From Carpediemonas membranifera BICM (lineage: Eukaryota; Protista; Fornicata): a stretch of 64,000 nucleotides of DNA. The stretch is taken from assembly GCA_019828565.1 (NCBI GenBank), contig JAHDYR010000003.1, positions 186,001-250,000 of the forward strand, in the 5' to 3' direction. Positions 1-12,071 of this stretch are shown piece by piece; position 1 is the stretch's first letter, and the number at the start of each line of letters is the position of its first letter. The position numbers were made by a program, and so were the translations under genes. The notes under the pieces were generated by a model that saw only the letters and a program-made list of their open reading frames with translations, was not told where the DNA came from and did not search any database.

Positions 1-3000
1 ATGCCCTCGACGGTACCCGAGAGCGTGAGGATCATGTCCAGGGCCCTGGGGACCATGGAGTTCAGCCACGTCATACTGTGGGGGGCAAAGTCAAGTCGAC
101 TGACAACTCTGTCGATCACATGGTCGACAAAGGCAGTCAGCCATAGACTGTCGGGCTTGCTGTTGAAGAAGCCGCTGTACTCTATGGACTCTGGCACTGC
201 GATCGGGGCCCACAGTTCATACCAGAGCTCGGCGACGGCCGCCATGAGGGCTGTGGGGTTCATGGTGATGGCAGACTCCGTGTTGGGCTGTGACAGGGCC
301 GCCGCAGCCACCGTCTGTGCGAGAACGGCGCTGATGCCCATGAGGATCTTGAGGGCATACGGGGAAAGATCGGGGTGGGTCATGGCCTGGTCGACCGTCT
401 GGACGGGCACCTCGTAGCCGGCATCGGGGTCGGGGTCGCTGTACTCGGACGAGTCGGAGGAGTAGTCGCTGTCGTACTCACTCGAGTCGTCTGAAGTCGC
501 CTCGAAGTCAGAGTCGGAGTCGGAGTCAGAGTCGGAGTCGAGTTGCCAGCGCTTGGCTCTGCGTCGTTCAACAATGTCGGAGTCATCTGAGTCGCTGTCC
601 GACTCGCTCGACTCGGACTCAGCAGTGGAGTCGTCCGCGGGCTTGGCTGGGATCATCTCGAAGATGTCTGTGAGGATAGAGCTGTCCAGGGCGAGCTTGC
701 AGCACATGTTGACGTCCACGGCGTTGCACATCTTTGTCAGGCGTGCGATGATGGTGACCATGGAGCATGCCGCTTGGAGGATGCGGGTGTGCTCGTTGGG
801 CTTGAGTCCGACAACTGTCTGGACGCTCTTCATCGCCATAAAGGTCGAGGCGAGCAGGACGGCGGTGGGGATGGCGCTGAGGGAGTCCTTGTCCGCCTTG
901 ATGAGGCGGACGGCGATACCGGCGGCCCGGTTCATGAGGGCGTTGGCGTTGAAGGTCTTGCCGTTGACAACCGTGGCGCACGAGACGACGTGCTTCATGA
1001 GGGCGAGCATTCCGAAGTTGGACTGGCCTACGACGGAGACGGCGGCGATGACAGCGGCGACGGACCGTTTCTTGGGCACCAGCTGGCACGCGGTCTCGGC
1101 AATAAACGTGACGAGGGCGTGGTCGTCACTCTGGAGCTGGCGGAGCAGGTCGTGGGCGTACACCGCGGCGAACTCATGCATGGCGTCGTTTCCTACTGTA
1201 ATAGCGGAGAGTTCCTTGGCGAGGTCAGACGCGCCATCCTTGAGGAAAGCCTCGAGCAGCGTCACTCTCTGGATAATGCTTTCGTGGTGCTCCATCATCG
1301 TCTCCCGCCACCGCTCAGTCTCGGCGAAGATGGCGTTGCTGAAGGGGAAGAGCAGGGTGGCGGGGCTGCGGGTGAGGGTGACCTTGAACGTCTGGCCCAT
1401 CGGGGAGGTCGAGGACTTCCCCACAGCCACAAAGACGTGGTGTTCAGCGAGCCTTGACCACAGCTCGTGCCAGGCCTTGGCGTGGCGGGCTGGTTTGACG
1501 ACAGAGGACAGGTTATGGCACGTGTCGAGGCTGGCGATGACGAACCTGAAGGCGAAGAGCACCTTGTCCATTATGACGGCCTTGAGGTGCTTCTTGAGAG
1601 AACCCTGCTTGCTGCCAGTGGCCTTGGCCTCTGCCTTCATCCAGTCATCCATAAATGACATGAAGATCTCAGCGTCTTCGGGCTGCTTGTCATGGTCCAG
1701 CACGAGCTGCTCAGCCAGATGATACACGACCCGCCTCATCCTCTTGTTCCCAGCGAGAGTCCTGGCCACTTCGTCAGCGTGCGTGCGGTCCTTGGAGCTT
1801 GGATCATGCACCGTGTGCTTCAGGGCGTCGAGGATGTCTGCCCGCACCTCGTCCGGGTTGAGGGTATCACAATCCAGCCTCTGTCTGACAATAGCGGCGG
1901 TGTCGGCCTCGCTGACCGTCCATCTGTCGCACGTGTCATCGATATGGTAGTGCTCCCACTTCCCGTCGAAGCTGCGGACGATGTCAGCTGGTCTGAACCT
2001 CGCCCGCTGGTCGACGCCCTCCCTGTGACACTCTGTCTCTACTCTGTGGCAGTGTGCGATGAGCACCAGGGCGGGGGTGCGGGTCGCCTTGATCTTGATC
2101 GGCTTGCCCGTCTTCTTGTTCTTCCAGAGATCCTCGATGCTGTGCTCGACAGTGCGGAGGAGGGCGCCGCTGGAGAATGCGAGGCTCTCCTGGTCGGCGA
2201 CGAGGACCTGGACCCCGCCCTGCTTCTCCCAGGTGCGGAGGATCTTCGTCAGGTCCTTGCGGGTGTCGACGGTGCTCAGGGGCGTGTACCGGACGGCCTC
2301 CTTGTCGACGCCGGCGCCCTCAGCGGCCTGGGCAACGATGGCTTCCTGGGCGTCGACGTCGGCGAAGGTGGTGACGAAGAGACGCACTGGCTTCATCTTG
2401 GAGCCCTCGTCATCCTGGCTGTCTTTTGCCTTCTTTCCACCGCTGGCCTTGACCTTCTTCTTCTTGGCCTCGACCACGTGGTTCTTGAGGGCGTCGGCCA
2501 GGCAGGCGGCATGGCCGTCGTTCTGACCGAGAAGCAGGCGAGCCTCCTCAGACGCCGTGCGCCACAAAGCGGCCTTGGTGAAGTCGACAACCCTCTCTGC
2601 CTCGGCGTCGGCGTCAGACGCCTCGTCGTCGAACTGGCCGTCGACGAGGTCAGCGATAGACTGCTCCAGACCGATACCGTGGCCGACGAAGAGCGGCGTC
2701 TGTGCCGTCTGTGTCCCGAACGGCCTGAGCCTTGACAGAGCTTGCTCCTGGTCGGTAACCCAGCCGATTACGGTCCTCGCAGCGTTGGCAGCGACGTCGG
2801 TCATGTTCTCGAGGGACGAGTCAAAGAGATACTTCTCGAACCTGTTGAGGAGGGGGATGGGCATGTCGCGGTAGACCTCCTGTGGCGTGGCGATTACTAT
2901 GAGGCGGAAGTTCTTGTGGACAAGCGCCTTGACCTCAATCGACCGGAAGCCGAGGTCGACATATGATCTGGCACCATATGTCGTGTAGGCGCAGTTGAAC

Positions 3001-6000
3001 AGGTCGTAGCAGGCCTCGTAAAGCTTGTCGAGGCCAGTCAGTACGACCGTCCCACCCCGGTCGAGCTGGACTTTCAGGCGCTGCAGCAGGGCGCAGTGGG
3101 CGACGTAGGTGCGGTCCTTCTCGAAGCTGGAGCCCCAGATAACCTCTGCGTTCTCGGGGACTATCTTGTACCTCACCAGGGTCTTGAGGATACCGGCGGG
3201 GTTGGATGAGATAATCATGGGGTAGCGGGCATGGCCGCCACGCTCCCTGAGAGCTGTCTTGATGAGTCGGCTCATGCGGTGCTCCTTCTTGAGGCTGGAG
3301 GCGTCAGAGATGTTGATGCGCTCAATCTCAATGACGGCGTCCTCGATCATCTTGTTCACGCGGGTCTGGGCGCCTGCCGGTAGACCGCTGAAGTTGCGGC
3401 GGACGGCTTCCACGAGGATGTCCTGGATCTGCATGCCTGGCTCCCGAAGTCTGTCGGCAATGAGCTTGCACGCAGAGAAGAAGTCGCGCTGGGCGAAGAA
3501 GTTGGAACGTGGGAATAGTGTGTTCGTCGAGCTGACGTCGTTGTGGGTGAGGGGTTTGATATCGGTCGTGCTCTCCTCCGCCATGGTCCTGACGAGGGTC
3601 TGGTAGGCCTTGGACAGGGCCTCGAGGAAGGGCCGGGTGACGTTGGGGTCGACGTCCTGCTGCTTAGCCCGCTTCTTGCCGTGGAGGAGGGTCTGGTTGG
3701 TGACCGTGATATCCACGGCCGTCTTGATGAGGTCGGCCTCGCTGGGCGTGTCTCTGAGCACCCACAGGCCGCGGTTGAGCTTGGCAGGGTCGAGTGCCCA
3801 GTTGGACATGGCCACGAACCCGATACGCTGCTCCACTGGGACGTCGAGCATGTGGTCGAACTTCTGGTGGAGGATCTTGAGCGGCATGTCGGTTGACATC
3901 TCCGCCAGACCGATCTCCTCGAGGCAAAGGGCGTAGATCATGCCCGCCGTCCTACTATTGGCGACGCTCTTCTCCACAGTCTCGAAGGCCTCGGCTAGGT
4001 CAGTTGTCCGGGTGATAGGCGAGCACTGCAGGGTCTGGAAGTGAACGGCGGGCAGCTGGGAGAATAGGGCGTCCTCGTTCCTAGTCCCGACCATGGTGTC
4101 CTTGATGACTGTCTTGGACAGCGTCTTGGACGTACCGGGGAGACCAATGATGTACATGGGGAGCCGTAGCACCAGAGTGCACACCATGAGGAAACAGTTC
4201 TCACTCAGGGCGTCGTTCATCGCTGTGCCCTTGGGGAGCTGGAGGTGGTCTGTGACGCAGCGGCGGAACACGGTGACTGTCTCGGCCACCTCCTCGCCGT
4301 TGAAGCCCGAGTCGGCGTCCACAAGGCCGGCCTGGAGGATGGCAGTGGCGACAGCGTCGTACAGCTCCGTCCTGGGGCTGACCTTGGAGCCGTACACGCA
4401 GGCAACGGCAGTGACAGCGGCGGCGTAGTCACCAAAGCCCACAGTGAGCTTGTTGACCTCAGCCTCGGCGTCGTCGGTGAAGTACTCCATGAGCCCATGT
4501 TTGTCGCCAATGGGATAGCGTGTGAAGAGGGCAAACATCTCCGCCACCATGTTGACCTCTCTGAAGGAGACGTGCCGGCATTGGGAGCTGGGGCTCGTCG
4601 TCATGTAGCTGTGGGCCGCGTGTGTCACCACTGAGAGGAAGGAGAGCTGCTCCTTGTATGTGTCCGGTGCGATGGAGCCCTTGTCGAAGGAGTGCATGCG
4701 GGAGAGCGTCTCATCAAGCCGGATCCTGATGCAGTCAGTGAGCTCATGGGCGGGCAGTGACTCAAAGGAGACGACGAAGTGGGTAAGTGTGGGAGGTAGC
4801 TTCTCCACGCGGTACACCAGCTTGGCCATCTTCTCGTCTGTCGTTGACCCGAGATCGTCGAGGTTGAGACCGGCCCTGCGAACAAAGGTGAGCTCCTCGT
4901 CAGAGCGGGAAACGTAGGGGTTGATGGCGCCGACCAGGGCGAGGATGGCACCAGAGTTGTCGAGCTTCTTGTCTCTTAGGAAGTTGCGGCCGATGACCTC
5001 GTTGATGAGGACGCCGTCGATGCGGTGCTCGCAGATGATCTCCTTGAATATGTTGATCGACTTCGTGGTGTTGAGCTCGTCAAAGAATAGGATGACGCGG
5101 CGGTTGGTGCTCTCGTAGAGGTCTCTGGCTTCAATGACCTTCTCGCGCAGCTCCTTGTAGAGCCGGGTCTCGTCATAAGCTGCGTGGATCCTCATGTGAA
5201 TGAGCTCCATGCCGGTCCGTTCGGCGATGCACTGGATGGTGTAGGTGTTGTGGGTCACCAGCATGCTCTCCGTGACAATGAAACGGCAGGTCGGGCCCTC
5301 CATGGTGAAGCCGTAGTAGTCGTCCTCGGGCTGGGGGGTGACGGTGAAGCCGACTGGGGTGGGTCCATCAGGGGAGGCCATGTCCGTCTTGTGGACGCGA
5401 CAGGGGAGGGCGCCGTGGATCATAAAGCTGGACGTCGCGGCATCAGCGCCGCTCTCCTTGACCAAGAGCCCGAGGGCGCGAGCAATGAACTTGATGTCCT
5501 CCTCGACCTGGCCCTGGGCGTGGGTGATGACGAAGGCGCCACTGTCGAGCGTGCCGTTGGTGTCGACGAACCCGGCCAGGAAGCTGAGCCGCTGCTGCAC
5601 GGAGCCGAGTTTGATGGCTGGGGGAACGTGTTTGGTGGAGCAGAGGTCGTTGGCTCGCAGCCATGTCAGGAAGGGGCTGTCGAGACCGTCGTCCCCGAGG
5701 AGGATGTAGCAATCAGCCTCGTCAGCCGGCACAAGGCGGCAGCCGACCGACTTGGCCCACAGTCTGAACCCTTCGACGACGTCTGGGTCGGCTGCAGTGA
5801 GCTGGGGCTCGCCATCGTGGCCCACGCTCCCAGTACCGAGCCAGGCGCCGAGGGTCCACTCGAACGAGGGGGCGTCAGGGACGTCATCGACCACGGCCGG
5901 CGGTGAATTAGCGAGGGCTGCAGACGTGTCGAACCGCTCGATGCGGGGGGCGTGGAACATGAAGGCCCGCTCACGGAGGTTGGGGTGCATGCATTCGTCG

Positions 6001-9000
6001 TCGAGGAAACGTCTGACTGGCATGTCGAGGATGGTGCCGTCGTGCAGGACGGGGCAGTTCTCGTGCACGGCGTCGGGCTGCTCGAGGGTGGCCTTGAATG
6101 CCTCAGCGGCGTCAAGGTCGGTGAAGGCCTCGGATCTGGCTCTGACGGCGGAGACCTCATTGGCCTCGTCGCGGCTGACGAGGACGAACTCGACACGACA
6201 GTCGCTGTCCTTGGTCAAGGTAGGTCCAGCACCGCTCATCATGAATGATATGACGTGGGACATGTTGGATGTGAACGCCCCGACGCCCGTCTCGACCCGC
6301 GCCATCTCCTCCCGGCCTCGGGCGACTGTCAGGACGCGCTTGGGGGTCCCCTCGGCGCCCATGATCATGTCGCCGGCCTGGATGTCCTCAGCGCACTGGA
6401 ACTGACCGCTGGCCATGAGGACCTTGGTGCCGCGGGCCAGGCACTTGCCCGAGCCTGTGGCGCCGCAAAGGATGGTGGGTACACCTGCCATGAGCCTCAT
6501 GGCGATGGAGACGGCCCTGTTGTACGAGTACCCCGTCATGACGAAGGGGCGCTGGCGGGTGCCGACCGAATCAGCAAGGTCGGCGAGCAGTCCGGAGAAC
6601 CTGATGTCATCGGCCTTCTCGGCGTCGGTACCGCGGCTGAGCATCATGCCGACCATCTCCGCCATGTGCTTGTGGCGGTTGGGGTCTGGGATCGTCATCA
6701 GTTCCGACCTGACAGCAGCGTCGTGGCCGTCGAGGACGATGTCCTTGGCCGCGTGGGTGATGAGGTTCTCGACGGCGTAGGCCTGATAGACGTAATTGTC
6801 TTGCATTCTGTGGTGCATGTCGTAGAAATATGCCATAAAGCGTCTGATCTGACGCTGGTACGAGTACGCCTGCGCGTTGCTGGGCAGGCAGTCTCGTACA
6901 ATGGCGTTCAGCTCAGCCACGCCGTCTGGGAAGGGGACGACATTGAGCTTGCGCTTGACGTAGTCTGGTATCCTATCCACAGTGGTCCTCATGAAATCGA
7001 ACTCGTGGAAGCGGCCGTAGCGATCAGTGCGGCCGGGGGGCTTCCTGAGCGTGCCGTCTCTCATGGCCTGGCGGTATGCTATGAGGAGGTGGTTCTCGAA
7101 AGCACTGAAGCTTCCGTTGATAACACACAGTGCTCTCTGAGACTCTGCTTCCCTCCCGACCTTGTTGTCGAACTCGTAGTGCACCAGATCAGTGCTGACG
7201 CCGTACCTGTCGTGCAGGGCCGTCCTGTCCTCCTTATGGAGCACCAACTCGGTGCAGTTGAGCATGAGGCCGAGCTTCCAGGCTCTAGTCAGACCGCCCT
7301 TGTGTCTCAGAGTGGCCTCGACAAAGGTCGACCGGTTTCTGTCGACCACCTTGCCGTTGGCCATGACTAGCCGACGGAGCACCATGAAGTCGAAGAGGAT
7401 GCCTGATATGTCCCCTGTGGCTGTGGGGGATACTTGGATGAGGTTCACCGCACCCTCTTCCAAGTTGGAGAAGAGCTCGGGCCTGATGGGGCCGTTGATC
7501 GAGATGTTGTTGGTCGGTGGGCCTCTGAACTTGCCGTCGGGCCCGTTCGACCCAAACTTGCGGAGGAGTCCGAAGATGAAGCGGGTCTTGCCAGTACCGC
7601 TGCTGCCGCTGGTGACGACGGTGACGTCTCTCACCGCGCTCTGCTTCCTCACCCACCGCTTGAGCTCTGCGAGGTTCTTGGCGGGGTCTGCGGCCTTGAG
7701 GGACCGGACGCTGGCCGTCTCGGTGAGCTGGCCGACTATGAAAGCAGCCTTGACGTCCTTATCGACCTCGATAACCGCCACTCGGGCCTTGGGAGGGAGG
7801 TCGCGCATGACCTTGATGAGGGCCACCTGCATGGCCCGGGGCATCACCGAGGGTCTGATCGCGACGAACACGGCATGGGGCTTGGCTGACCCGACCCGCT
7901 GGCCAAAGCGGGCGACGTCGTCAATGGTGGTGTCGGGCTTGCATCGGAAAACCTCAGCCGAGATGGGCAGTCTGCCGACTTCCGTCCTGAACAGGTCGAG
8001 ACAGAATACAAAGGGGTCAGTCATGTGTGTGTCGCCCACGAGGAAAACGTTGGACGCCCCCTTGAGAACTACATGGGACTCTGGCTTGCCGGGCTTGGGA
8101 ATGGTGATCTTCCCGAGCTGGGGGATGACCTTATGGATGGCAGAGATGTCGGTGCTACGACATATGGCCTGCTCGAGGTTATATACCGTGTCGCCGTCGT
8201 TCAACTTGCGGAGGAGTCGCATGACAGTCGATGACTCAGCGCAGGCCAGGTCGAAGCTCTCAGCCTGCAGCCGACGGAGCTGGACCATCCAAGTCGTCTC
8301 AACTTGGGCCAGGCGCTTGGAGATGTCGTCAATGTCGTCTGCACTGGCGTGCCAGAAGTGGAAGACGTGCCTCACTGCAAAGGCGGGGTGACCAGTCCTG
8401 GCGAGGTTATGAGCGTTACCAGCCAGCCTCCTGCACGCGGCGATGAGCTTCTTGATGTGCTTGACGTCCTTGCTCTTGCTGTTCTTGCCCTCCTCGTCCT
8501 GTTCCATCAACACAGCCCTGGCCTCGATGTCCAATAACTGGGCGAATGAGATCTTCCTGGCAGACTGTGTCTGGCTCCGGATCATGCCAATGGCGTCCCT
8601 GATGTCTGCGGGACTTGCCCCGGCGTCCATGGTCTGGGCCATCGATGACTTCAGTTGACTCACCCGGTCGACACTAGCGTCGTTTGAGTCGAACACGAGG
8701 AAAGAGACGAGCTGGGTGTTGTCCTCAAAGGCGGGCAGGGAGCGGGGGTCGAGGTCGAGGACGATGAGGCCACCCCTGATCTCGGCCAGCTGAGACATGG
8801 TCTTCTTCTTGCCCGACGCGGTGACCTTCGCCTTGAGGTCCGTGAGCTCAGTCAGGAAGGTGATCGAGTTCACCATCGACTCGGTGCTCGTCAGGATCCT
8901 GTCACACCGGTTCTTGTCCTTGACAGCCTCCCACAGTCGGTTGGTGAATGTCTGGAAGTTCGTGATGTGACTCCTGAATGATCCAATCAAATCTCTGAGG

Positions 9001-12000
9001 ACAAGGACGTCCTCGATGACGTCCTGGAGCTGGATGTTGTTCCCGTCGATGTGGTCTCTGCCGATCTCCACGAACTGCTTGAAGTTGTTCTTGAGTCTGC
9101 TGTCGGTCTTGGTCAGCTCATCGCCGGGCCCGTACGATTCGAGGGCCGGGACGAGGAAGTTGTTCTGCCGGTCGACCAGCCAGTCCACAACCTTCCACAC
9201 GTTGTCCTCGCACATGTTGGCGATGGTCTTCAGTCGTTGCTCGGCCCTGGCGTCGCCTGTCTCGCCGATAATCAGACCGCGAGAATCTGACTCGACCTCC
9301 AGTCGGCCGGTGCTAAACCCTGCGATGTCATTGAGTGGCGCGGTCGGGTCGTCGCGGCGCTTGAGGTTCTCCGTCATCATCAGGATATCCTGCACTTTAG
9401 GGTCGACCCGCATCATAGCAGGCTGGATACGGATGGCTAGGTCGCAGAGGAGCTTCATTGCAGTGCCGTTCTTGGCAGTCTCGACCAGCTGGTTGAGGCG
9501 GGTGATCGTGCTGGCGACCTCGTCGGGCAGAGTGACCGACTGTGAAAAGCGAGTCATGGTCTCGTCACAATTACCACTGATGTCTACAGACGTCAGGTCG
9601 AACTCGGGGCCAGGCGTCTGTGTGGCGACGTACAGCTGGGTAAACTGCGAAGTCAGAGTCTCAGGGTCCATATCCCAGACGGGCTTGAGGTCGCCCATGG
9701 TGATGGTGCCGAGGCGGGCCGTGTTGAGGATGAGCTGGCACTCCTCCTTGAGCTTGGCAGAGACGGAGGCCAGGTTCTCCAGGGTGATCTTGCCCGTCCC
9801 GTCTGTCGCCCGGTCGATGTGGGCCATGATACGGCGGAAGAAGAAGGCGTTCTTATGTCCCAGAACGTAGAGCGTGTGGAGGTGCGGAAGGGCCGGGGCG
9901 AGGTCGGCCAGGCGGTTGGCCCAGTCGACGTAGTTGGTTTGAGAGAGAGGATTGAAGCTCTTAGCGAATGAATCGTCGAGCTTAGCGCCAAATGTCCCTA
10001 GAATATCGACCAGGAACTTCATAACGCGCTGGTTCCTCTTCTTCTGCAGTTCGAATACGGCTGACTGCTCTCTGATGGCGTTGTAACGCGCCTGGTTTGG
10101 CGTCACGACCGCTATGATGTCTGATCTGAACCCCACCACCTCGCTATCGGCAGGGTCAGGGGTGGGGTCGGGTTGAGTGTCGTCGTCCAGGGGTAGCAGG
10201 AGGGCGCACCGGTTGAAGAATCGGAGCTGGCCGATAGGTAGCTCACCTCGGCCACTAATGTGCTTCTCCACCATTCCTTTGAAGTCCTCGACTGATCTGC
10301 AGGTCAGGCCCGTGATGCGGTGGATGAGAAGCATCAGGCTGAAGAGAGGCTGCTGGTTTTCGGGGCGTACTTGCGTCTTGGTGTAGACTACGGCGAGGGG
10401 CGAGGCATCGTCCAGTGTTGTCGTCTCGAGCGCGGTCTTGAGAGCAGCCGTGAAGTCGATGGCTTCCTCGGTGGTCTTGGTGTTCTTCATCTCGGTTGAA
10501 ATGCGCCGCTCGAGAGTGGTTACCATGGCTCCAGGGAGTCCAACCACATACGACTTTGGGTTGAGGCAGTAGAGACGCATAAGGTCCACTGGGGAGTGCT
10601 CAACGCGGGGCAAGACGTACTTTGTCGGCCAATTAGGATCCATGCCCCGCTTGTATCTCTGGAGAATACCTGATACGGCGGATGCATATTTGACGATATC
10701 GGTGATGTCGTCGACCGCAGCGATGGCCTTGTCAAAGAGGGAATTGACAACGTCAAGCAACCCAGCGGTCTTGAAGAAGTCGGTTCCGACGTCAAGCATA
10801 TACTCCTCTGTGATGGTAACGGACTTGACGGCCTGCTGAAGGGCCTGTATCTCTTCGGTGTCTGGCTTCCAGGGAGCTGGGGCGTGAGACGGGACCGGCA
10901 CTTGGGTCTCACCCTCCTTGCAGTTCTCGTTGTGCTTGATGGCCTCGGCGTAGGCCTTATCATACGACTCTTTCGCAGCAATGGCGCCTCGATATGCGGC
11001 GACGGCGCTATCGATCTTGAGACGGTCCTCCTTGCAGACGATGTCCATGAAAGGAGCGCAAACCTCGGGGTAGACCTCCTTGTAGTCGGTGACGAACCTA
11101 CGAAGCCGCTTGAAACAGGTATCAGCGAGGGCGGGAACGTAGTCGATTACGAAGGGCATAAACTGGACAGGCGCTTTCTCGAGGATGTGTCGGAAGAACT
11201 TCTCGGAGAAGAAACGAATGGGAACGTCGCAAACCTTGTGACGCTTGAAACCGGCTTCGATAGAGTCGGCAATATCGGTCTGCTGCTTCATCCACAGCTG
11301 TATGGGCGTCTCGGAAGGTATCACGGCGTCCTCGAAGAAGGCTGCCGTGCCGTCGCTCTCAGCGCCGCTATCATCAGCAGGCTGGGGCTCTGCGTCGGTG
11401 TCATCGTCCTCGGCGGCCATGGGCAGGGCGACGTAGAAGTCGGGGACCTGCGGCAGGGAGTCACATAGTGGGAGGATGTCTATGATGTTCTTCTCGCTAA
11501 CGATAAACGAGGATATGGGGTCAGGCAGCTGAGGGAACCTGAGATCCCTTTTCTCAGTCTCGTCATCGTGTAGCATCTTCCAAGCCTTAGAAATGATGTG
11601 CTCAAAGCAGTTGGGATCATCTGGAAGAGGATGATTCCACTTTGCGATCTGCTCATCATCAAGGGCCGGGAAGATCTTGGCGAGATCCTCAGGCGAGTGT
11701 TTGTTGTGCATGAGGGCGGACCAGCTGTGGCTCTTGATGTCCTTGTACTCGCTGGTGATGTGCGGGTACTGGGCTAGGAACAGGTCGACAGGGGCGTGGT
11801 TCAAGGTGAAGGATTTTGTCCTGCCCCACATCGGTCTACGAACCTCCTCATCATCAATCGAGAAGACGGCGCAGTCATCGACGAGTTTGACGTCAAGCGT
11901 TGTGGCAAGGAGCTTCTTCGTGAGCTTCAGAACCTCGGGTTTTTCGTCTTTGTTCTTCTTAGAAGAGAACACGACCTTCTGATCCTTGCTGTGTACGATG

Positions 12001-12071
12001 GTGAGAGTGCATACGCGACTTCCACCACGTTTTCCGCCACCGTTTCGGCCTTCGTTCTTTGCTTTTCTCAT
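1..12071 (-). CDS. RNF213/mysterin-like giant multi-AAA+ ATPase precursor containing an intein (more than 4000 aa, 3' end outside window)
   Basis: ATG at 12071 has an in-frame TAA just upstream. The frame appears open to the window edge, which explains its absence from the ORF track. Manual translation gives RNF213-type motifs in the expected order: VVTSGSSGTGKTRF, GVPTILCGATGSGK|TYTI, ILFFDELNTT..FKEIICEH, GAINPY, LVYRVEKLP, NDALSENCFLMV..LPMYIIGLPGTSKTL, LEEIGLAE..MPLKILH, FVAMSNWALDPAKLNRG, LYEACYDLFN..YVDLGF..VHKNFRLIVI..PIPLLNRFEK. Confidence 0.9.
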   Translation of the reverse strand, partial: MRKAKNEGRNGGGKRGGSRVCTLTIVHSKDQKVVFSSKKNKDEKPEVLKLTKKLLATTLDVKLVDDCAVFSIDDEEVRRPMWGRTKSFTLNHAPVDLFLAQYPHITSEYKDIKSHSWSALMHNKHSPEDLAKIFPALDDEQIAKWNHPLPDDPNCFEHIISKAWKMLHDDETEKRDLRFPQLPDPISSFIVSEKNIIDILPLCDSLPQVPDFYVALPMAAEDDDTDAEPQPADDSGAESDGTAAFFEDAVIPSETPIQLWMKQQTDIADSIEAGFKRHKVCDVPIRFFSEKFFRHILEKAPVQFMPFVIDYVPALADTCFKRLRRFVTDYKEVYPEVCAPFMDIVCKEDRLKIDSAVAAYRGAIAAKESYDKAYAEAIKHNENCKEGETQVPVPSHAPAPWKPDTEEIQALQQAVKSVTITEEYMLDVGTDFFKTAGLLDVVNSLFDKAIAAVDDITDIVKYASAVSGILQRYKRGMDPNWPTKYVLPRVEHSPVDLMRLYCLNPKSYVVGLPGAMVTTLERRISTEMKNTKTTEEAIDFTAALKTALETTTLDDASPLAVVYTKTQVRPENQQPLFSLMLLIHRITGLTCRSVEDFKGMVEKHISGRGELPIGQLRFFNRCALLLPLDDDTQPDPTPDPADSEVVGFRSDIIAVVTPNQARYNAIREQSAVFELQKKRNQRVMKFLVDILGTFGAKLDDSFAKSFNPLSQTNYVDWANRLADLAPALPHLHTLYVLGHKNAFFFRRIMAHIDRATDGTGKITLENLASVSAKLKEECQLILNTARLGTITMGDLKPVWDMDPETLTSQFTQLYVATQTPGPEFDLTSVDISGNCDETMTRFSQSVTLPDEVASTITRLNQLVETAKNGTAMKLLCDLAIRIQPAMMRVDPKVQDILMMTENLKRRDDPTAPLNDIAGFSTGRLEVESDSRGLIIGETGDARAEQRLKTIANMCEDNVWKVVDWLVDRQNNFLVPALESYGPGDELTKTDSRLKNNFKQFVEIGRDHIDGNNIQLQDVIEDVLVLRDLIGSFRSHITNFQTFTNRLWEAVKDKNRCDRILTSTESMVNSITFLTELTDLKAKVTASGKKKTMSQLAEIRGGLIVLDLDPRSLPAFEDNTQLVSFLVFDSNDASVDRVSQLKSSMAQTMDAGASPADIRDAIGMIRSQTQSARKISFAQLLDIEARAVLMEQDEEGKNSKSKDVKHIKKLIAACRRLAGNAHNLARTGHPAFAVRHVFHFWHASADDIDDISKRLAQVETTWMVQLRRLQAESFDLACAESSTVMRLLRKLNDGDTVYNLEQAICRSTDISAIHKVIPQLGKITIPKPGKPESHVVLKGASNVFLVGDTHMTDPFVFCLDLFRTEVGRLPISAEVFRCKPDTTIDDVARFGQRVGSAKPHAVFVAIRPSVMPRAMQVALIKVMRDLPPKARVAVIEVDKDVKAAFIVGQLTETASVRSLKAADPAKNLAELKRWVRKQSAVRDVTVVTSGSSGTGKTRFIFGLLRKFGSNGPDGKFRGPPTNNISINGPIRPELFSNLEEGAVNLIQVSPTATGDISGILFDFMVLRRLVMANGKVVDRNRSTFVEATLRHKGGLTRAWKLGLMLNCTELVLHKEDRTALHDRYGVSTDLVHYEFDNKVGREAESQRALCVINGSFSAFENHLLIAYRQAMRDGTLRKPPGRTDRYGRFHEFDFMRTTVDRIPDYVKRKLNVVPFPDGVAELNAIVRDCLPSNAQAYSYQRQIRRFMAYFYDMHHRMQDNYVYQAYAVENLITHAAKDIVLDGHDAAVRSELMTIPDPNRHKHMAEMVGMMLSRGTDAEKADDIRFSGLLADLADSVGTRQRPFVMTGYSYNRAVSIAMRLMAGVPTILCGATGSGKCLARGTKVLMASGQFQCAEDIQAGDMIMGAEGTPKRVLTVARGREEMARVETGVGAFTSNMSHVISFMMSGAGPTLTKDSDCRVEFVLVSRDEANEVSAVRARSEAFTDLDAAEAFKATLEQPDAVHENCPVLHDGTILDMPVRRFLDDECMHPNLRERAFMFHAPRIERFDTSAALANSPPAVVDDVPDAPSFEWTLGAWLGTGSVGHDGEPQLTAADPDVVEGFRLWAKSVGCRLVPADEADCYILLGDDGLDSPFLTWLRANDLCSTKHVPPAIKLGSVQQRLSFLAGFVDTNGTLDSGAFVITHAQGQVEEDIKFIARALGLLVKESGADAATSSFMIHGALPCRVHKTDMASPDGPTPVGFTVTPQPEDDYYGFTMEGPTCRFIVTESMLVTHNTYTIQCIAERTGMELIHMRIHAAYDETRLYKELREKVIEARDLYESTNRRVILFFDELNTTKSINIFKEIICEHRIDGVLINEVIGRNFLRDKKLDNSGAILALVGAINPYVSRSDEELTFVRRAGLNLDDLGSTTDEKMAKLVYRVEKLPPTLTHFVVSFESLPAHELTDCIRIRLDETLSRMHSFDKGSIAPDTYKEQLSFLSVVTHAAHSYMTTSPSSQCRHVSFREVNMVAEMFALFTRYPIGDKHGLMEYFTDDAEAEVNKLTVGFGDYAAAVTAVACVYGSKVSPRTELYDAVATAILQAGLVDADSGFNGEEVAETVTVFRRCVTDHLQLPKGTAMNDALSENCFLMVCTLVLRLPMYIIGLPGTSKTLSKTVIKDTMVGTRNEDALFSQLPAVHFQTLQCSPITRTTDLAEAFETVEKSVANSRTAGMIYALCLEEIGLAEMSTDMPLKILHQKFDHMLDVPVEQRIGFVAMSNWALDPAKLNRGLWVLRDTPSEADLIKTAVDITVTNQTLLHGKKRAKQQDVDPNVTRPFLEALSKAYQTLVRTMAEESTTDIKPLTHNDVSSTNTLFPRSNFFAQRDFFSACKLIADRLREPGMQIQDILVEAVRRNFSGLPAGAQTRVNKMIEDAVIEIERINISDASSLKKEHRMSRLIKTALRERGGHARYPMIISSNPAGILKTLVRYKIVPENAEVIWGSSFEKDRTYVAHCALLQRLKVQLDRGGTVVLTGLDKLYEACYDLFNCAYTTYGARSYVDLGFRSIEVKALVHKNFRLIVIATPQEVYRDMPIPLLNRFEKYLFDSSLENMTDVAANAARTVIGWVTDQEQALSRLRPFGTQTAQTPLFVGHGIGLEQSIADLVDGQFDDEASDADAEAERVVDFTKAALWRTASEEARLLLGQNDGHAACLADALKNHVVEAKKKKVKASGGKKAKDSQDDEGSKMKPVRLFVTTFADVDAQEAIVAQAAEGAGVDKEAVRYTPLSTVDTRKDLTKILRTWEKQGGVQVLVADQESLAFSSGALLRTVEHSIEDLWKNKKTGKPIKIKATRTPALVLIAHCHRVETECHREGVDQRARFRPADIVRSFDGKWEHYHIDDTCDRWTVSEADTAAIVRQRLDCDTLNPDEVRADILDALKHTVHDPSSKDRTHADEVARTLAGNKRMRRVVYHLAEQLVLDHDKQPEDAEIFMSFMDDWMKAEAKATGSKQGSLKKHLKAVIMDKVLFAFRFVIASLDTCHNLSSVVKPARHAKAWHELWSRLAEHHVFVAVGKSSTSPMGQTFKVTLTRSPATLLFPFSNAIFAETERWRETMMEHHESIIQRVTLLEAFLKDGASDLAKELSAITVGNDAMHEFAAVYAHDLLRQLQSDDHALVTFIAETACQLVPKKRSVAAVIAAVSVVGQSNFGMLALMKHVVSCATVVNGKTFNANALMNRAAGIAVRLIKADKDSLSAIPTAVLLASTFMAMKSVQTVVGLKPNEHTRILQAACSMVTIIARLTKMCNAVDVNMCCKLALDSSILTDIFEMIPAKPADDSTAESESSESDSDSDDSDIVERRRAKRWQLDSDSDSDSDSDFEATSDDSSEYDSDYSSDSSEYSDPDPDAGYEVPVQTVDQAMTHPDLSPYALKILMGISAVLAQTVAAAALSQPNTESAITMNPTALMAAVAELWYELWAPIAVPESIEYSGFFNSKPDSLWLTAFVDHVIDRVVSRLDFAPHSMTWLNSMVPRALDMILTLSGTVEG
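5247..6443 (-). mobile_element. Intein (399 aa, class-1 Cys...His-Asn/Thr) with a degenerate LAGLIDADG homing endonuclease domain
   Basis: Block A CLARGTKVLMASG follows GATGSGK directly. Block B is FTSNMSHVISF, block C-like WTLGAWLGTGS, block E-like FLAGFVDTNG, and blocks F/G DDYYGFTMEGPTCRFIVTESMLVTHN followed by +1 Thr. Removing it restores the Walker A GATGSGKT. Confidence 0.95.

Follow-up and report, generated by a model that had tools for sequence, protein, structure and literature searches.

A class-1 intein without catalytic endonuclease aspartates splits the AAA3 P-loop of an RNF213 homolog in Carpediemonas membranifera and has its nearest relatives in unrelated P-loop genes

In a 64,000-nucleotide (nt) stretch of the Carpediemonas membranifera genome, hereafter the window, we analyzed an intein that interrupts the ATP-binding P-loop of a giant ATPase related to RNF213/mysterin. 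An earlier note on this DNA had described a 399-amino-acid (aa) in-frame insertion with class-1 splicing residues that splits GATGSGK/T (the slash marks the insertion point), and the segment 5247-6443 on the minus strand was confirmed as a class-1 intein of the PI-SceI/VMA type. Its nearest relatives lie in two unrelated P-loop genes of the same genome, and the sequences make it likely that this is a constitutively splicing selfish intein, copied between non-homologous genes without a nuclease of its own. Two features that go beyond the earlier note, the loss of the nuclease aspartates and an intein family spread through the genome, proved the more informative. The relevant features of the window, all on the minus strand, are the following.

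5247..6443, minus strand: class-1 intein of PI-SceI/VMA type, 399 aa, made up of a Hint domain, an accessory insert spanning about aa 71-190, and a LAGLIDADG domain with two motifs
6441..6443, minus strand: Cys1, the N-terminal nucleophile
6255..6266, minus strand: block B motif NMSH (Asn60, His63)
5829..5858, minus strand: LAGLIDADG motif 1 (block C), WTLGAWLGTG, with Thr204 at the catalytic Asp position
5553..5582, minus strand: LAGLIDADG motif 2 (block E), FLAGFVDTNG, with Asn296 at the catalytic Asp position (PI-SceI D326 by alignment)
5247..5258, minus strand: block G, VTHN (His398, Asn399)
6444..6464, minus strand: end of the N-extein, GATGSGK, the AAA3 Walker A motif up to its Lys; the last 9 nt equal the kinesin host flank
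5239..5246, minus strand: start of the C-extein, with the +1 Thr of TYT; these 8 nt equal the kinesin host flank
1..12071, minus strand: host gene, one uninterrupted open reading frame (ORF) of 4961 aa including the intein, extending about 2.8 kb beyond the window start into a part that carries the RZ finger
5076..5093, minus strand: AAA3 Walker B motif (ILFFDE), intact
3915..4145, minus strand: AAA4 Walker A (GLPGTSKT) to Walker B (ALCLEE), intact and intein-free

Translation of the minus strand from 6443 to 5247 gave 399 stop-free codons, from CLARGTKV to MLVTHN, in frame within the host ORF, with the upstream extein ending in GATGSGK and the downstream extein starting with TYTIQ. The hidden Markov model search for Hint and LAGLIDADG domains that had been proposed as a check returned the Pfam families Hom_end_hint over intein residues 1-398 (E 1.5e-19; 71 bits against a cut-off of 32) and Hom_end over residues 273-329. 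An AlphaFold model of the intein built on 100 relatives (predicted local distance difference test score 94.5) matched PI-SceI over its full length (Foldseek E 9e-24; template modeling score 0.74-0.78), in agreement with a Hint fold. In the alignment of these 100 relatives C1, H63, H398 and N399 were invariant, and the +1 residue is Thr, which completes the class-1 signature of Cys1, block-B His, terminal His-Asn and +1 Thr; block B reads NxSH, as in VMA-type inteins, rather than TxxH. Excision of the intein restores a conserved host motif, GATGSGK-TYTI aligning with GETGCGKT of RNF213. Removal of the segment as an intron, which the earlier note had named as an outcome that would overturn it, found no support: a spliceosomal intron is disfavored by DNA ends that read TG..AC, not GT..AG, and by contigs of the public run X1, which span both intein junctions and never skip the segment, although X1 is only guessed to be RNA.

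The host ORF starts at 12071 and exits the window at its start, its length of 4961 aa having been read with the neighboring DNA. Its attribution to the RNF213/mysterin family was borne out, as the protein matched RNF213 structures (E 8e-76), the split motif aligned to GETGCGKT, the AAA3 Walker A, and its Lys corresponds, after the construct offset, to human RNF213 K2426. The gene is single-copy in the genome, and both AAA3 and AAA4 carry Walker A and Walker B motifs, AAA3 having its Walker A only once spliced. An RZ finger was detected above the cut-off (PF20173, E 3.6e-12); Pfam scans of the host found no match to a RING domain, which several annotated RNF213-like proteins do not list either. 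The host resembles human and mouse RNF213 in its size of about 5000 aa, in a dynein-like AAA core with AAA3 and AAA4 Walker motifs, and in a C-terminal RZ finger that keeps the Cys of the GEC motif, whereas it differs in the intein at the K2426 equivalent, the absence of a RING hit and the intron-free ORF. Its Walker A reads GATGSGK/TYT rather than the usual GETGCGK/TRL, and its RZ finger (G000:C4, about 185000, beyond the window start) begins with CxxC, where animal and choanoflagellate examples have CxxxH. The region that separates the AAA core from the RZ finger contains a Ser/Asp-rich low-complexity stretch (window 415-635, minus strand). In human and mouse RNF213, activation of the E3 requires that ATP be bound at both AAA3 and AAA4 (PMC12075652), and mammalian RNF213 depends on ATP binding at the same two sites to coat pathogens (PMC11549300). 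Because the intein splits the very Walker A motif whose ATP binding activates the mammalian E3, the unspliced precursor would lack the AAA3 ATP site, and by this analogy the proposal that the site needs splicing to work appears sound.

A search of the C. membranifera genome (24.24 Mb, 69 contigs) identified inteins in the P-loops of SMC6 (GGNGAGK/S) and a kinesin (GTTGSGK/T), both hosts being annotated proteins of this organism, as the nearest relatives of the RNF213 intein. Both share 84-85% protein identity with it, and nucleotide identity among all three is 86-90% and extends from the first to the last codon of the intein. Synonymous divergence (dS) among the three sisters is 0.17-0.24, and the ratio of nonsynonymous to synonymous divergence (dN/dS) is 0.13-0.17 in the N-terminal Hint part, indicating stronger constraint there than in the nuclease part (0.43-0.62). 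The three form one clade with a Shimodaira-Hasegawa-like approximate likelihood ratio test (SH-aLRT) support of 99. The allelic rule thus fails: the nearest inteins are in SMC6, kinesin and dynein, and none was found in 79 other RNF213 homologs, which are mostly animal and include no fornicate ortholog. The kinesin gene with the intein is an inverted duplication (G000:C63:820-836 kb) that is 99.9% identical across 3.6 kb, and one of its intein copies has a 1-nt deletion, which could be an assembly error.

Two LAGLIDADG helices are kept in the RNF213 intein (aa 194-204 and 282-296), with structural matches to I-DmoI and PI-SceI, and the acidic catalytic residue is absent from the ends of both (Thr204, Asn296). 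We take D218 and D326 to be the catalytic aspartates of PI-SceI. The corresponding residues are Ala and Ser in the SMC6 intein and Ala and Asn in the kinesin intein; in the order RNF213, SMC6 and kinesin, the codons read ACT, GCT and GCT at motif 1 and AAC, AGC and AAC at motif 2. From this codon pattern, the common ancestor of the sisters would most simply already have carried Ala and Asn, and hence neither aspartate. By contrast, relatives outside Carpediemonas retain an acidic residue at motif 1 in 110 of 121 cases and Asp at motif 2 in 113 of 121. None of the 12 P-loop inteins of C. membranifera has both aspartates; the only intein of the genome that does belongs to a different clade and sits at a non-P-loop site, and no free LAGLIDADG_3 gene was found in the genome. 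Loss of active-site aspartates goes with inactive nucleases (PMC8966425), and the nuclease of the RNF213 intein is accordingly predicted to be inactive.

Sequence exchange between resident inteins was observed directly elsewhere in the genome, which carries at least 12 P-loop intein loci, a lower bound, across ten unrelated nucleoside triphosphatase (NTPase) families: RNF213, SMC6, kinesin, AAA ATPase, XRCC3, SRP-type GTPase, SNF2, DEAD-box helicase, G-alpha and Ski2. A second young group, which we call sub-family B, comprises inteins in the SRP-type GTPase, SNF2 and two DEAD-box genes that are 91-97% identical. Within it, the DEAD-box and SNF2 copies differ at 56 positions over the first 200 nt but at 18 over the following 796 (p 3e-27). 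This sub-family is a mosaic, its breakpoint between the DEAD-box and the SNF2/SRP-type copies falling near nt 200, and it demonstrates directly that DNA has been exchanged among inteins residing in unrelated genes.

We propose that Cys1, His63, His398-Asn399 and the +1 Thr would cut out the intein and yield the joined sequence GATGSGK-TYTI, so that an RNF213-like ATPase/E3 is restored. The coding sequence of the intein probably reached the RNF213 site, or was refreshed there, through fairly recent, non-allelic copying from one P-loop gene of the genome to another. The version that was copied would already have lost both endonuclease aspartates, and the copying would therefore have relied on host recombination. 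Along one possible route (a), a break at an empty GK/T site, due to chance or to an active relative of viral origin or encoded by a copy since lost, would have been repaired from a sister intein through short flank identity; along the other (b), ectopic gene conversion would have overwritten an older resident intein. We lean slightly toward route (a), because sister identity is uniform to both ends of the intein and because the RNF213 and kinesin hosts share 17 exact nt at the junction, 9 before and 8 after the insertion point. In all other non-homologous host pairs the junction match is 3-11 nt, and the 17-mer occurs in none of five empty kinesin sites. This match fits either an insertion guided by microhomology or a co-conversion that brought kinesin codons into RNF213, although it is suggestive only; we also lean toward kinesin as the likelier recombination partner of the RNF213 intein. 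NHEJ (non-homologous end joining) is absent from C. membranifera, which is predicted to be haploid (PMC8516963). Also in favor of a parasitic element are the invariant splicing residues, the constrained Hint region and a single-copy host with intact motifs.

Several observations weigh against this proposal. Given equal amino acids, the probability that the Ser, Thr and Tyr codons match by chance is about 0.03. SGK/TY is native in two other RNF213 homologs: the Walker A motif of the 79 homologs is mostly GETGCGK/TRL, but two read GETGSGK/TYS, which weakens the signal of co-conversion. The flank match of SMC6 to its sisters amounts to just 6 nt, little for an insertion driven by homology. Mosaicism among the RNF213, SMC6 and kinesin inteins was significant in the raw data (p 5e-5) but not after thinning (0.055) or after collapsing clustered sites (0.18). 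No empty, intein-free paralog or allele of the host RNF213 was present in the genome, leaving co-conversion of the flank unprovable, and the comparison of occupied and empty metamonad paralogs that the earlier note had proposed came to nothing, the gene being single-copy and no fornicate RNF213 ortholog having been retrieved. Finally, no active trans-acting nuclease of the P-loop clade was seen in the genome, within a census that sets a lower bound.

Endonuclease-driven non-allelic homing would offer a different order of events, in which an active ancestor of relaxed specificity homed into each of the three genes, loss of the aspartates following later, either in parallel or as a dead nuclease segment spread by conversion, and perhaps under selection, a P-loop cutter being toxic in a haploid without NHEJ. 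Active-looking relatives do occur in the same clade, such as P0081 on a giant-virus-like contig, and the closest outside relative retains the motif 1 Asp. A sequence preference is hinted at by the occupied sites, of which nine of the ten independent ones end in GGCAAG, compared with 52% of Gly-Lys pairs in window genes (p 0.014). In addition, outgroup-informative sites support different sister pairings along the intein, and losses to Ala and to Asn recur in separate sub-families. We nevertheless consider this order of events unlikely: the three sisters agree in their codons at the two catalytic positions, which means that parallel loss would require the same changes several times, both aspartates are found together in 0 of the 12 P-loop copies, and the mosaic test in the sub-family of RNF213, SMC6 and kinesin was not significant.

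The earlier note had left open whether the insertion is a pure parasite or a conditional switch; the parasitic half of this choice was strengthened by the closeness of the sisters (dS about 0.2) and by the intein-free homologs, whereas the switch gained no sequence-level support. As a domesticated switch, splicing would sense oxygen, redox state or metals and so gate the AAA3 site and with it E3 activity. In its favor, mammalian E3 activation (PMC12075652) and pathogen coating (PMC11549300) depend on AAA3 ATP binding, the host is an anaerobe, the intein contains 10 cysteines, and some inteins are described as splicing conditionally (PMC10710043, main text). However, a near-identical intein sits in a motor (kinesin) and in a chromosome ATPase (SMC6), the intein is young at synonymous sites and absent from the 79 RNF213 homologs, the sister inteins have the same cysteine count, the N-extein (GSGK) has no cysteine beside Cys1, and an immune role of a protist RNF213 is itself hypothetical. 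We therefore regard a switch as very unlikely. Hardly credible, in our judgment, is that there is no working intein at all, the segment being either a product of misassembly that joins repeat copies or an insertion by which a decaying gene was inactivated. Near-identical copies elsewhere might mislead an assembler, and one kinesin copy does carry its 1-nt deletion, but the RNF213 copy differs by about 10% from each sister, separate contigs of run X1 span both junctions with zero mismatches, and 4961 codons are open with all catalytic motifs of the host kept. A selfish, constitutively splicing intein copied by host recombination thus remains our preferred explanation.

Outside Carpediemonas, the nearest relative (45% identity) is an intein that occupies the AAA2 P-loop of a dynein heavy chain; it comes from GCA_002919055.1, the assembly of a eukaryote whose DNA is GC-rich and whose introns are short. 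Of the 121 outside relatives, 118 are located in P-loops of many different NTPases. A tree group with an SH-aLRT of 98 joins nine Carpediemonas inteins with this dynein intein, a kinesin intein of Dysnectes brevis, myosin and ABC-F inteins from eukaryotic metagenome contigs, and the intact-nuclease intein P0081. The tree, a short search without bootstrap in which all 134 rows were kept, is uninformative on the donor. Close relatives in viral and metagenome contigs were not found by a peptide-pattern search, which detects close kin only. Dysnectes brevis, another fornicate, carries related P-loop inteins in kinesin and in an ArsA/GET3-like ATPase (P0107, P0184).

The genome also contains about seven further Hint elements outside the P-loop set, and several inteins of unusual structure. 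The P-loop intein of a Ski2-like helicase (G000:C6:about 862600-864570, minus strand) encloses another intein within its block B region, the two together measuring 638 aa, and a host-less copy 67% identical to the outer Ski2 intein is followed by four codons and then a stop (G000:C15:279763-280635). The intein with both catalytic aspartates lies at IASR/CGVF of a bacterial-type CoA-activase-like gene (G000:C8:696700-701100, minus strand), apparently just downstream of a short intron, and upstream of it is a free-standing, 45% identical copy ending in His-His. At the classic VMA site of V-ATPase subunit A, an intein ends in HHN and meets a stop within a few codons (G000:C13:571020 onward), so that this gene is either broken or continued via an intron. 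A mini-intein of 163 aa occupies a membrane segment of a P-type ATPase (G000:C6:about 1605400-1605914), and a divergent intein of 414 aa lies in a host of unassigned family (G000:C54:about 605500-606740).

Non-allelic hopping of inteins among P-loops in a metamonad nucleus has been published for Anaeramoeba (Gallot-Lavallee et al. 2023, PMC10710043). As described in the main text of that study, Anaeramoeba likewise has many nuclear inteins that spread between unrelated P-loops (clusters 1 and 15), with kinesin, dynein and SNF2 among the hosts and viral relatives. The all-P-loop cluster 1 is, however, of class 3 with atypical N-termini, whereas the Carpediemonas intein is of class 1 with a canonical Cys1; and where its authors suggest NHEJ or promiscuous endonucleases, Carpediemonas has no NHEJ and no P-loop copy with both catalytic aspartates. 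RNF213, Carpediemonas and fornicates do not appear in the main text of that paper, the host list of its Dataset S1 falling outside this comparison, and no named Anaeramoeba sequence was among the intein matches looked up. The intein shares with PI-SceI, the Sce VMA1 intein (PF05203 and PF05204), its fold, domain order, NxxH block B, an insert within Hint, two LAGLIDADG helices and an ATPase P-loop site, but identity is only about 18% in a structural alignment, the insertion is at GK/T with a +1 Thr instead of the VMA site, both catalytic aspartates are replaced, and the element would spread between non-allelic sites. PhoVMA-like inteins with degenerate endonucleases (PMC8966425) similarly keep the nuclease fold and have lost the active-site aspartates; the homing-cycle model strands them at a fixed allele, whereas the dead version in Carpediemonas is common to unrelated genes at 86-90% nucleotide identity. 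In searches that did not extend to the Anaeramoeba host table, we found no literature on inteins in RNF213, Carpediemonas or fornicates, and the C. membranifera genome paper and its supplements never mention inteins (PMC8516963). RNF213 is thus provisionally a new kind of intein host.

The route by which inteins reach non-allelic sites is open, and the Anaeramoeba study asks in its main text whether that genus is an outlier (PMC10710043). Because related inteins occur in Dysnectes brevis and in another eukaryotic assembly, our findings suggest a second lineage rich in inteins, the free-living fornicates. With young, alignable copies in unrelated hosts, no NHEJ, missing nuclease residues and a conversion breakpoint, Carpediemonas would make the mechanism directly testable. 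Since AAA3 ATP binding gates the mammalian E3, the Carpediemonas RNF213 may by analogy be a natural, splice-dependent version of the enzyme, and protein engineering might benefit from an intein able to tolerate P-loop exteins of several unrelated kinds. We tentatively extend these observations to a general possibility, that P-loop inteins in Carpediemonas-like protists colonize new unrelated genes after the death of their endonuclease, relying on host recombination at 6-17 nt of matching flank and in some cases bringing codons of the donor flank along, the TGSGK/TYT of RNF213 being such a kinesin-derived patch. If true, this would represent homing-independent intein spread, outside the classical homing cycle.

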